Assembly: GCA_002269645.1 (NCBI GenBank)
Contig: NIVC01003408.1
Coordinates: forward strand, 35,345 to 99,344
Length of the DNA: 64,000 bases
Direction of reading: 5' to 3'
Origin: Macrostomum lignano
Taxonomy: Eukaryota
Shown here: positions 24,643 to 62,186 of the stretch, in pieces
Layout: each line of letters opens with the position of its first letter
How positions within the stretch are numbered: the stretch's first letter is position 1
Program-made: the position numbers and the translations under genes
The notes under the pieces: model-generated
The model's input: only the letters and a program-made list of their open reading frames with translations
Database searches by the model: none
What the model was told of the DNA's origin: nothing

Positions 24643-27600
24643 ATGTACCTCATCGGGCTGAGCGCCTGCATTCTGCTGCTTACTTGGCCCGGTGCTTCGG
24701 CCTACAGTAAGTGGCTCGCTATTTTGCTGTCAGCCCGCCCCACTCAGGCAAGCTAGAATCAGTACGAGCTGCTTATCCATTGCTTAGCGATAATCGAACG
24801 CGTCTCTGATTAGAGTTATCCTACTGTACTGCAATTTGGAACAGGTTTTACTCGATGTAGCTTTACTCAGCTGCAGGGGGCTCACGGCATTCGGATACGC
24901 GCAGGGAGATCCTTTGGTGCCGTGGTGTCCCCAGCGCGGTCTTCCTCTCCGGAGAGTCCAGGAGGTGGATGGTCGCTCGCCCGGTAGCCCTTAGGTAGCG
25001 GATGAGCTGGCAGAAATTTTCGGGTCTGAAAACGTCGGAGAGGTTCGGGTTTGGGCCGAACTAGCCTGTCCTGAGTAAAGGCGAGACATTCACAGGTGAA
25101 CAACAGAGGGGCAGAATGGGCATTCCTCGGATTTTCCCGGAGGTTTGGCGATGCCTAGCGAAGCAGTCATGACCTTAGAGGGCCATGGATACTGCCTTGA
25201 TGTCCAGGCACATGTTTAATATCCCTGCGGTTGAGTCCAAGAAGGCGCTGGGGGCCCTTCAAAGGACACCTCAAAGCGCTGCCCACTTCTCACTGTGTAG
25301 ACAGAAACAGAAAATCAACTATAGCTCCTCGTTACACGCTTTTCTCGTTAAAACAAGGCTATTTTCGTAAATCTGCAGTCGTTGGAAAAAAGTTACAAAG
25401 TCAATATGAAAGAAACGGTTCGATTTCCATAGCTTCAAATATAGGCAAATAAATCAAAGTTGCTAAACTTCTGAAAGCGCCCGAACTAAACACACCACAC
25501 TGGCTTCATGGATCTCCGAAAGTAGAAAATTACCGGTTCAGTGCTGGAAAACTAATTCGTTTCATTAAGCCGATGTATGCTGACGTAAAGCGAAGCTAGG
25601 TCTTCAGATAAAATTTCTTAATTTTGATATACTATTGCTTCTGCATGTCTGTCCGAAGCTGTCTGCAATATATGTCAAGTCACGGAAGTATTTTTAGTGC
25701 CGCAAATAACTTATTAATTCCCTCCAATGCCAAGCCAGGATGTCCCACGGGCCTGATGCAGCACTTTGACAAGTGCCTGTGGCTGGACCATGCGAGCAGG
25801 CGCCACTCAAACGCGGTGCTCAACTGCGCCAGCGCCAGATCGTCTCTAGCTGGAGAGCCCGGCAAGCTGTACGCGCCGAAGACCCGGCACGACCTCAGCC
25901 TGTTCGACCAGGTGGAGTGGTACGACAGCTTCATGTATGTCGACGCCAGGCGCAACGCCAGCCTCGGCTCCGGGTTTTACGACAACCTCGGCAACCGGGT
26001 GCCTGACGACCTGTTCTACTTTGGCTTCACCGGCGGGGACGCGGTCGGCTACGACTGTGCCGTCTACTCTACCAAGCGGGGCAAACTCCTGCCGGAGAAT
26101 TGCAATAATTACCGACCAAGCGTGTGCCAGGTGAATTCTGGTGCCGCCAACGGTGAGGACCTGTTTGATGCTGGATCGTTTCTCAGCTGGTGGTATGGTG
26201 TCCCGTCTGGTAGGATGGTGTCCCGTCTGGTAGGATGGTGTCCCGTCTGGTAGGATGGTGTCCCGTCTGGTAGGATGGTGTCCCGTCTGGTAGGATGGTG
26301 TCCCGTCTGGTAGGATGGTGTCCCGTCTGGTAGGATGGTGTCCCGTCTGGTAGGATGGTGTCCCGTCTGGTAGGATGCTGTGCCATCTGGTAGGATGGTG
26401 TGCCACCTGTTTGGAGATACCATATCTGTTTCTTCCCTCAATTTCAGGCTCCTGCCAACCGTCGTTTGCTGGATCTCTGTTTAAATTCGATTTCATTGAC
26501 TCAACCAGCGTTTACTCGAGGCTCAGCAGCTACGGATCTGACATGCAGCTGTACCTGATGGCCCAAGTGCAGAGCTCCCTGCCGGTGTTCTCTACCATTT
26601 TCTGCGGCGTGAGTTGAACACCAGACTTTGCTCTGCCCTGCCAAAAACTGTCCGCAATATTCTGAACCAAAAAAATGTAACCTTTCTTCAGGGCCCCACC
26701 TGCTCGTCCCTAAGTACCTGCAAGTACACCTGGCCGAGCAGTGCTACTGGCTACCCCAACACCGCTTATGGTACTTACCAAGGCCAAGGCCTCGAGTACA
26801 TCTGCCTCCGTGAGTTGCGTACCATACATCTGCACCTTTAAATATTTCTGTCCTATTTGTGTCTGTCCGTCTGTCTGTCTGTCTGTCTGTCTGTCTGTCT
26901 GTCTGTCTGTCTGCCTGTCTGTCTGTCTGTCTGTCTGTCTGTCTGTCTGTCTGTCTGTCTGTCTGTCTGTCTGTCTGTCTGTCTGTCTGTCTGTCTGTCT
27001 GTCTGTCTGTCTGTCTGTCTGTCTGTCTGTCTGTCTGTCTGTCTGTCTGTCTGTCTGTCTGTCTGTCTGTCTGTCTGTCTGTCTGTCTGTCTGTCTGTGT
27101 GTCTGTCTGTCTGTCTGTCTGTCTGTCTGTCTGTCTGTCTGTCTGTCTGTCTGTCTGTCTGTCTGTCTGTCTGTCTGTCTGTCTGTCTGTCTTAGTGTCT
27201 GTCTGTCTGTCTGTCTGTCTGTCTGTCACACTCAGGGCCGGAGGAGATGCAGCCACTGATGCACGGCATCCCCGGCCGTCTCAACGCCACTCTGAGCGCT
27301 TCAAGCTTCGTCAGCTACGCCAGACCGGAGTACGCGATCTTGAACAACACATTTTCGACTGGCAGTGAGTGACTAACTGTTGATTGAGCTGATATTATAT
27401 TGCCCTGACCTTTTATTGCATACTTGTATAAGCTGAAAATCGTATAGAGCTTTCCCAAGTTGCAAACTCTGTAGGAGTTCTGTGAGTACTGTTAAATGGT
27501 ATAGGTCCGTCATGCGCCGAGATCAGTGACGTATAGACCTCGGTTTTAATACAAGCGTATAAAATGCAGAATCAAGCGCTGTTGAAGGCAGTAAAAGGCG

Positions 27601-62186: not shown

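Follow-up and report, generated by a model that had tools for sequence, protein, structure and literature searches.

The 64,000-nucleotide stretch analysed here (contig NIVC01003408.1, positions 35,345 to 99,344 of the forward strand; hereafter the window) carries most of one very large gene. About 52 exons bounded by GT–AG or GC–AG introns, located between positions 25739 and 62186 on the + strand, join into a single frame of 3330 amino acids that contains no stop codon. The product is predicted to be a secreted protein composed of sugar-binding-type domains and consists of three tandem super-modules. In the best reading of the sequence, which is judged probable, each super-module contains a discoidin (F5/8C) domain split by an insert of three other domains. 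A short exon (E_N) would encode the N-terminal segment of the discoidin domain, and its remainder (the C-part) would be reached about 410 residues later.

Each super-module opens with a C-type lectin-like domain, after which comes a short segment, X, of no assigned class. These are followed by the E_N exon, a kringle (two exons), an F-type-lectin-like domain (two exons), a third β-rich domain (two exons) and two or three exons for what remains of the discoidin domain. The putatively split discoidin domain is succeeded by an unsplit F5/8C/FTP-like domain and then by further β-rich domains. Modules 1, 2 and 3, comprising the split domain with its insert, are 569, 578 and 573 amino acids long and align collinearly from end to end with 21–27% identity. 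A search of 5.8 billion clusters with the whole conceptual protein yielded one match, the Macrostomum lignano protein A0A1I8G7N1 (P0001; 1868 amino acids, 40% identity), which is collinear with the window exons in tblastn (26 segments). An earlier note on this DNA had described a split layout in all three modules; the collinear exons, the single frame and the collinear P0001 alignment bear it out. The peptides quoted there lie on the + strand (...RPEYAILN at 27247, GCLEPLL...ASSQH...PEGAILG at 45793 and ...RPEDAIIG at 58173), as do the quoted C-terminal ends (...YGI at 36298, ...FGC at 53085 and ...YGC at 62171). The insert is 408 residues long in module 1, 418 in module 2 and about 409 in module 3, shorter than the 500 or so of that note. 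The parts of the three modules are as follows.

Module 1
27236–27364 (+): E_N, 42 amino acids, phase 1-1, without the N-terminal Cys; 62.5% identical to P0001
27661–35648 (+): insert, 408 amino acids; delimited by splice sites and phases, tblastn of P0001 and the kringle profile
27661–27786 and 28982–29041 (+): kringle exons; the weak 27661 acceptor was chosen by phase and by the match of HRVC to P0001
29361–29600 and 30025–30261 (+): F-type-lectin-like exons; splice sites and P0001 tblastn
31876–32023 and 35236–35648 (+): exons of the third β-rich domain; splice sites and P0001 tblastn
35741–35802 and 36022–36316 (+): discoidin rest, 119 amino acids, without the C-terminal Cys; 12.6 bits alone against Pfam F5_F8_type_C; the first exon is 71% identical to P0001

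Module 2
45788–45910 (+): E_N, 40 amino acids, phase 1-1, with the N-terminal Cys; splice sites and a Pfam gain with its own C-part
46476–49741 (+): insert, 418 amino acids; splice sites, translation and P0001 tblastn
46476–46610 and 46686–46760 (+): kringle exons, within the insert
46889–47113 and 47706–48005 (+): F-type-lectin-like exons, within the insert
48653–48816 and 49387–49741 (+): third-domain exons, within the insert
49818–49888 (GC donor), 50546–50686 and 52953–53100 (+): discoidin rest, 120 amino acids, with the C-terminal Cys; Pfam 26.2 bits alone

Module 3
58168–58290 (+): E_N, 40 amino acids, phase 1-1, with the N-terminal Cys; BLASTP E 1.3e-10 to the open reading frame (ORF) of the module 1 E_N
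58598–61436 (+): insert, about 409 amino acids; curated splicing
58598–58741 and 59824–59895 (+): kringle exons, within the insert
60166–60392 (with a 1-nt frameshift) and 60484–60717 (+): F-type-lectin-like exons, within the insert
60785–60972 and 61077 to about 61436 (+): third domain, within the insert
61437–61505, 61758–61916 and 62042–62186 (+): discoidin rest, 124 amino acids, with the C-terminal Cys; Pfam 13.4 bits

The probable split discoidin domain

Profile comparison identifies the C-parts of the modules as discoidin domains, in agreement with the earlier note. A family profile was built from four sequences, either as chimeras (E_N joined to the C-part) or as C-parts without E_N. 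The C domains of factors V and VIII match it with E-values of 1e-10 to 1e-15; the best value with E_N is 2.4e-15, summed over both C domains, and factor V gives 1.4e-14 without E_N, summed over two C domains. Neuropilin b1 matches with E 1.7e-7 in the presence of E_N and 3.5e-8 in its absence, and CASPR2, DDR1/2 and discoidin-2 match more weakly. The discoidin rest of module 2 also shows a weak direct match to neuropilin b1 that ends ...EVYGCK. The C-terminal exons of modules 2 and 3 resemble one another (BLASTP E 6.5e-4), and a comparison of ORFs between the modules detects protein-level similarity for E_N (E 1.3e-10), the C-terminal exon of the F-type-lectin-like domain and the C-terminal exon of the discoidin domain.

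The relation of E_N to the C-parts was assessed by joining the two and scoring the chimera against Pfam F5_F8_type_C (PF00754), the gathering cut-off of which is 28.2 bits. Module 2 scores 25.0 bits as encoded, with the insert kept, and its C-part alone scores 26.2 bits; joined to E_N the C-part reaches 34.0 bits, above the cut-off, and the start of the match moves from profile position 25 to position 2. In module 1 the gain is from 12.6 to 17.7 bits, with a match from position 3 onwards. Foreign E_N segments also raise the score of the module 2 C-part, which becomes 30.8 bits with E_N of module 1, 32.6 bits with that of M. lignano module 2, 28.6 bits with that of M. lignano module 1 and 27.8 bits (a gain of 1.6) with that of module 3. 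One reversed and two shuffled controls gave 25.5–27.2 bits. In a larger control set, made of 30 shuffles and 55 further 40-mers taken from the protein itself, one of the 85 reached 28.4 bits, the maximum being 29.2 bits, and genuine E_N pieces alone gave a match beginning at profile position 2–3. With a factor V-like C1 domain the alignment of the chimera profile spans the junction; the CASPR2 discoidin domain aligns with this profile from end to end (26.3 bits, compared with 20.0 bits without E_N). Taken together, the sequence evidence for E_N as the start of the discoidin domain is positive but moderate. The earlier note had expected the insert-removed chimera to score better, which is what modules 2 and 1 do and module 3 does not.

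F5/8C domains carry a disulfide between an N-terminal and a C-terminal Cys. Both cysteines are present in modules 2 and 3 and both are absent in module 1, a pattern that had been noticed earlier; both are also absent in P0001 module 1 and in P0003 (A0A1I8HHG8), another M. lignano entry. A metagenome fragment that covers the C-terminal end only (P0004) lacks the C-terminal Cys. This covariation is suggestive of one shared domain, and in modules 2 and 3 the barrel would probably be closed by the usual N-to-C disulfide. In module 1 a Cys is located six residues upstream of E_N, in the closing part of the preceding segment (...YICLRPEEMQPL).

The end of E_N aligns to '...ARLHLQGRSN' of factor VIII C2 and the chain resumes at 'AW', so that the insertion point coincides in the alignment with loop 2210–2217. 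In the structure of factor VIII C2, the L2210–G2214 loop, Q2213, R2215 and N2217 belong to the phosphoserine-binding site and the membrane face (PMC9643838). From this alignment and the factor VIII C2 literature, it appears reasonable, by analogy, that the inserted cassette leaves from the ligand-binding pole, as the note had supposed. A placement of the loop at the pole opposite the spikes was considered and withdrawn, since loop 2210–2217 of factor VIII C2 is in the phosphoserine- and membrane-binding face (PMC9643838).

A number of results weigh against a discoidin domain nested in this way. Module 3 scores 13.4 bits in Pfam with or without E_N, with no extension of the match, and the chimera of M. 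lignano module 1 gives no F5_F8_type_C match and no gain. An E_N profile searched alone against solved structures retrieved no discoidin domain, its best matches being unrelated proteins with E of about 1. The addition of E_N lowers the score of neuropilin b1 from 36.8 to 34.6 bits and that of factor VIII C2 from 35.0 to 30.2 bits. The covariation of the cysteines amounts to one evolutionary event. AlphaFold models were obtained for M. lignano module 1 (26-row alignment) and for the N-terminal half of M. lignano module 2, without the discoidin rest; their mean confidence (pLDDT) is 51.7 and 51.6, respectively. In the former, which represents the most divergent module type, E_N, the kringle, the third domain and almost the whole discoidin rest stay below pLDDT 50; in the latter E_N and the kringle do. 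The exon chain is a genomic prediction and includes weak acceptors at 27661, 48653 and 61758. Finally, the M. lignano protein P0002 (A0A1I8J9L1), 94% identical to P0001, has RMTRERRS in place of the 42-residue E_N before the kringle (residues ~215–225); the model may be mispredicted, or the difference may reflect a frameshifted allele or alternative splicing.

Some of these results are what would be expected if E_N were an independent conserved short element, such as a linker strand of X or of the kringle, with a mere resemblance to the start of a discoidin domain, and if the C-part were a discoidin domain shortened at its N-terminus, with other strands or a further chain completing it. This explanation is considered unlikely. 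It draws on the absence of detectable discoidin similarity in E_N alone, on the failure of E_N to improve most profile matches to solved discoidin domains, on the zero gain in module 3 and on the lack of structure of E_N in both AlphaFold models. Opposed to it are the Pfam gains, which beat 84 of the 85 controls and place the start of the match at positions 2–3 only with real E_N, and the cysteines of the two discoidin ends, which are present or absent together. If a discoidin barrel lacked its first two strands and the N-terminal Cys, the conserved Cys at the C-terminal end would have no partner, and the need of the barrel for its first strands likewise argues against an independent E_N. Segment X is poorly kept between the modules whereas E_N is conserved, which speaks against E_N as a part of X. 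The F-type-lectin-like domain is predicted as a complete sandwich without E_N (pLDDT ~90), which speaks against E_N folding into the FTP domain. Among the 26 tblastn segments shared with P0001, E_N (62.5% identity) and the first resuming exon (70.8%) are the best conserved, which argues against E_N as a relic.

The inserted domains

The first domain of the insert is confirmed by profile comparison as a shortened kringle with six cysteines. A profile of seven sequences matches the kringles of HGF, prothrombin, ROR1/2 and plasminogen with all six cysteines aligned; against solved structures it gives E 1e-11 for tandem kringles and 1e-5 to 1e-7 for single domains. About 14 residues are deleted relative to solved kringles, and the Pfam kringle model PF00051 found no match in the window modules at E up to 10. 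One of the M. lignano relatives (A0A1I8GZE6, P0009) is named 'Kringle domain-containing' in UniProt.

The second domain is confirmed, at the level of the structural model, as having an F-type-lectin-like (galactose-binding-domain-like) fold (FTP; PF22633 and relatives); here, as for the kringle, the earlier assignment stands. AlphaFold predicts it in M. lignano module 1 with pLDDT 86–96 over about 140 residues, and Foldseek relates the model to 1K12, 3CQO and CBM32 (probability 1.00, E 2.6e-5 to 1e-4) and, again with probability 1.00, to SpX-3 and lectinolysin. Its counterpart in module 2 of P0001 (residues 1593–1671) scores 27.0 bits against Pfam F5_F8_type_C_2, the cut-off of which is 27.8 bits. 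The fucose-binding motif of F-type lectins is His...RGDCCGER, or H...RxDxxxxR/K. It was not evident by eye in the aligned F-type-lectin-like sequences, and fucose binding is thus not implied.

The third domain is probably, as a tentative assignment from its model, a concanavalin-A-like sandwich. It had no Pfam match at E up to 10, and a six-sequence profile retrieved no solved structure at E up to 10. The model, of moderate quality (pLDDT 60–83), resembles GH16 glucanases, SPRY domains, galectins and the lectin domain of Vibrio cholerae sialidase. LamG belongs to the concanavalin-A-like fold; the designation 'LamG-like' given to this domain earlier found no match in sequence and is replaced by the broader one.

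Gene structure, relatives and other elements of the window

The window is eukaryotic in character, with short open segments and introns rich in microsatellites and transposon remains. The exon structure was read from genomic DNA and protein comparison. Exons were called with a codon-usage score trained on the clearest open segments, GT–AG exons were chained by phase, and each junction was then curated by hand with lists of splice sites, phase and the alignment of the three repeats. Positions 27236 and 62186, the limits given in the earlier note, were recovered independently in the chaining, as an acceptor and a donor, respectively. Pfam searches of rough exon translations gave almost no matches; domain calls required curated splicing and family profiles. 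MAFFT scattered the alignments of exon fragments badly, and these were trimmed to blocks.

Phase-1 introns surround E_N, the kringle and the F-type-lectin-like unit in all three modules. The boundary between the cassette and the resuming discoidin domain is a phase-1 intron in modules 1 and 2 and has no intron in module 3; phase 0 prevails among the introns internal to the third domain and to the discoidin rest, although module 1 has phase 2 within its third domain. This pattern is what one would expect from the shuffling of phase 1-1 modules into a phase-1 intron within a discoidin domain. In module 3 the end of the insert and the first stretch of the resuming discoidin domain, which takes up the last 23 codons, are encoded in one exon, 61077–61505, and not in separate exons as had been thought.

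Three junctions deserve description. The intron after the first resuming discoidin exon of module 2 (49889, +) is of the GC–AG type with an otherwise perfect donor (CAG|gcaagact), accepted because the reading frame requires it and because the exon then ends as in modules 1 and 3. The intron between X and E_N of module 2 (45680–45787, +) has 108 nt and is open and in frame, so its retention would leave the reading frame intact. The 45679/45788 junction was fixed from P0001, which reads ...RVEN-GCLEPLL there; a single exon running from X to E_N was rejected, as P0001 shows an in-frame intron. The sole frameshift of the chain, of 1 nt, is in exon 60166–60392 of the module 3 F-type-lectin-like domain. 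An extra base is required between 60279 and 60339 to keep this exon in frame, and a run of five C is located at about 60311–60315; the frameshift is either an assembly error or the onset of decay of the third module.

Alternative splicing offers another explanation of the layout. Skipping of the cassette would join E_N to the resuming exon and produce an ordinary discoidin domain; the nested form would then be one splice product or none, and the cassette reading a minor isoform or an artefact of exon chaining. Such skipping keeps the frame in modules 1 and 2 (phase 1 to phase 1, with A+AC giving N and G+GC giving G), and P0002 does handle the E_N region differently. In module 3, however, the exon shared by the cassette end and the resuming discoidin domain makes clean skipping impossible. 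Six M. lignano gene models also speak against it, P0001, P0003, P0009, P0010 (A0A1I8GDF2) and P0013 among them, as E_N runs straight into the kringle there, and the cassette exons are conserved at 35–58% identity between the window and P0001. Skipping is accordingly rated as quite improbable. That the locus is a decaying or misassembled gene copy, the layout of which would have no functional meaning, is rated as very unlikely: the 1-nt frameshift, the transposon and long microsatellites within introns, the several weak splice sites and the failure to find an identical protein in databases can be cited for it, but one frameshift per 10 kb of coding sequence, beside a C5 run, may be an assembly error, the 3330 codons have no in-frame stop, and protein-level similarity extends both to M. 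lignano and between the modules, with the same order in each.

The relatives on which the reading of a nested discoidin domain draws are few. P0001 and P0003 continue from E_N and the kringle through the same domains up to the discoidin C-part. Ten proteins were recovered when 1.84 billion representatives were searched exhaustively by HMMER with P0001 module 1; all are M. lignano entries or short ORFs of one JGI metagenome, and a third search added the M. lignano entry P0013. A protein search with the discoidin chimera profile returned two macrostomid sequences only, ordinary discoidin proteins being absent from the matches, and a word-indexed protein search with rough module 3 returned none. 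No database protein identical to the window protein was found: the identity of the window to any relative is 35–70% per exon, with a maximum of about 71% in any segment, which points to a diverged paralogue or to a related macrostomid species. No contig encoding P0001 is on record. P0001 and P0013 start with a hydrophobic leader that resembles a signal peptide by eye, and from this hydrophobic N-terminus of the M. lignano relatives the window protein is predicted to be, probably, secreted as well.

Two contigs of the JGI metagenome 3300040801, L001 (945 bp) and L002 (1603 bp), contain exons of the same gene family with much shorter introns, and their source appears to be a third macrostomid-like animal. 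On L002, four successive exons belonging to the F-type-lectin-like and third domains fit into 1.6 kb, and L001 has a discoidin C-part followed by the next FTP-like domain. They give a partial domain order only, the E_N junction being on neither contig.

The domains outside the nested units are located as follows.

25739–26209 (+): C-type lectin-like exon, super-module 1; Pfam Lectin_C E 0.0011, below the cut-off
26448–26608 and 26692–26809 (+): segment X, super-module 1; unclassified, precedes E_N
38145–38417, 38497–38654 and 38776–38863 (+): unsplit F5/8C/FTP-like domain, super-module 1; exon chain
39398–39732, 40557–40698, 41901–42160 and 42243–42378 (+): β-rich domains, super-module 1, class not assigned; exon chain
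43375–43546 and 43713–43933 (+): C-type lectin-like domain, super-module 2; P0001 residues 1231–1331 (Lectin_C E 9.5e-11) align here
45410–45679 (+): segment X, super-module 2; exon chain
53181–54642 (+): unsplit FTP-like domain, super-module 2; exon chain
55034–56154 (+): β-rich domains, super-module 2; exon chain
56547–57331 (+): C-type lectin-like domain, super-module 3; exon chain
57810–58076 (+): segment X, super-module 3; exon chain

Residues 5–154 of P0001 align to 25739–26809 at 40% identity, and residues 778–838, the counterpart of the unsplit F5/8C/FTP-like domain, score 27.3 bits against Pfam F5_F8_type_C. Paralogy is seen between 43308–43547 and 56376–56855. The domain at 39398–40698 was considered as a candidate unsplit paralogue of the split discoidin domain, for use as an internal reference, and was dropped (profile–profile probability 0.08%).

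Other elements of the window include a broken Mos1/mariner-like transposon at 51462–52606 (+), in the last intron of the module 2 discoidin domain. The element is spread over at least three frames, with HTH_48 at E 1.4e-5 and a weak Transposase_1 match. A retrotransposon remnant is located upstream of the gene at 19556–21789 (−), with RNase H at E 1.7e-13 and an RVT_3 match. Long micro- and minisatellite arrays that look like coding sequence occupy introns adjoining the module exons (26857–27195, 33268–34945, 45930–46440, 47195–47740 and 48848–49337); they translate as (CLSV)n, (GEERR)n, (YLSI)n, a GGFMRWWLL repeat and a 53-nt repeat and give long spurious ORFs on both strands. The ORF at 13337–13828 (−) scores 27.7 bits for a Sina-type zinc finger, below the cut-off of 32, and may be an exon of a neighbouring SIAH-like gene. 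The paralogous ORFs 4890–5225 (−) and 9241–9639 (−) are 49% identical, had no Pfam match and contain terminal repeats with dibasic flanks and a closing Gly: ...DKRAMRLMRIGRR...DKRAMRLIRIGRR...GFYRPSIRYGRK in the first, ...KRAMRLMRLGRK...KRAMKLLRLGKK...GFYRPSFRYGK in the second. They look like neuropeptide precursors of amidated AMRLMRI/L-type and ...RPS(I/F)RY-type peptides.

Proposed origin and comparison with known systems

The nested discoidin domain would be formed in the following way. The exon of 40–42 codons would supply its N-terminal segment, including the Cys, the PLL motif, the 'ASS' strand and the 'ARPEYAILN' strand. The next ~410 residues would form the kringle, the F-type-lectin-like sandwich and the third β-sandwich as independent domains, and the chain would return at a conserved 'GFW' and finish the discoidin barrel, E_N and the C-part folding together. 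In evolutionary terms, three phase 1-1 cassettes may have been shuffled into a phase-1 intron situated in a loop of an ancestral discoidin domain, and the whole super-module may then have been triplicated. As the M. lignano proteins have the same order, the insertion and the triplication would predate the divergence from the M. lignano relatives. The barrel would serve as a rigid base, with the cassette emerging at the pole that corresponds to the ligand-binding one of factor VIII C2; the canonical pocket would be remodelled or replaced, and the protein may be a multivalent binder of glycans or matrix. This fuller account, a discoidin socket that received a three-domain cassette in its ligand-pocket loop through a phase-1 intron, with the nested unit triplicated and the gene family confined to macrostomids, is held with slightly more belief than doubt.

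In extracellular mosaic proteins, phase 1-1 exons are usually shuffled between domains. Domain insertion is common in enzymes and, to our knowledge, rarely documented in extracellular mosaics. If the account is true, the discoidin domain described here would be the first known to accommodate other domains within itself, and exons would clearly have been shuffled into a domain and not between domains. Should the fold be confirmed, an intron within a domain would have been the entry point for shuffled modules, the nested unit would have been duplicated as a block, and the discoidin barrel would tolerate about 410 foreign residues in its ligand-binding loop, a permissive site for protein engineers. 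Standard annotation misses the discoidin domain, the M. lignano relatives bearing no label beyond that of a C-type lectin, kringle or CUB protein. The result has no bearing on any long-standing open question.

The canonical discoidin domains (factor V/VIII C1–C2, neuropilin b1/b2, CASPR2, DDR1/2; PF00754) are matched in sequence profile by the C-parts of the window and have in common with them the signature W...(Y/W)IQ(V/A)xF...V..V..QG...YS.D...LR..L.GC. The N- and C-terminal cysteines are likewise found in modules 2 and 3, and module 1 is without the disulfide. As in the C1–C2 pair of factors V and VIII, an F5/8C-like domain, here unsplit, directly follows the split one. Unlike the canonical domains, the window chain would exit after the 'ARLN'-type strand and re-enter about 410 residues later. 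No discoidin domain with an inserted domain was described in the open-access literature searched. The closest known arrangement is that of the M. lignano proteins P0001, P0003, P0009, P0010 and P0013, with the order C-type lectin, X, E_N, kringle, F-type-lectin-like domain, third domain and discoidin rest; these entries are named 'C-type lectin', 'Kringle' or 'CUB domain-containing protein', their split is unannotated and the models are partial or chimeric.

The F-type lectins (eel agglutinin 1K12, striped bass FBP32 3CQO) and CBM32 have the fold predicted for the second inserted domain and share with it the C-terminal motif GRY(V/A)V(I/L)...L.(I/V).G. Proteins of the Caspr/neurexin IV type combine a discoidin domain and a concanavalin-A-like sandwich in one extracellular chain, as the window protein probably does, and among solved discoidin domains only that of CASPR2 aligns with the chimera profile from end to end. 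Their discoidin and LamG domains stand in series, whereas the arrangement in the window protein would be nested, and the third domain of the window has no detectable sequence similarity to LamG.

Nested extracellular domains are known from integrins and laminins: the β I-like domain is inserted in the hybrid domain and the latter in PSI, the integrin α I domain in the β-propeller, and laminin domain IV in an LE module. In these proteins a complete foreign domain interrupts a loop of the host in a secreted mosaic, and the window protein would, to judge from its sequence, be of the same kind. One survey reports domain insertion for about 20% of multidomain proteins (PMC13114784). The window differs from integrin and laminin nesting in its host fold, in a guest of three unrelated domains and in the repetition of the nested unit three times per chain. 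The nested discoidin domain is thus probably an instance of known domain insertion, with a host fold and a guest string of its own.

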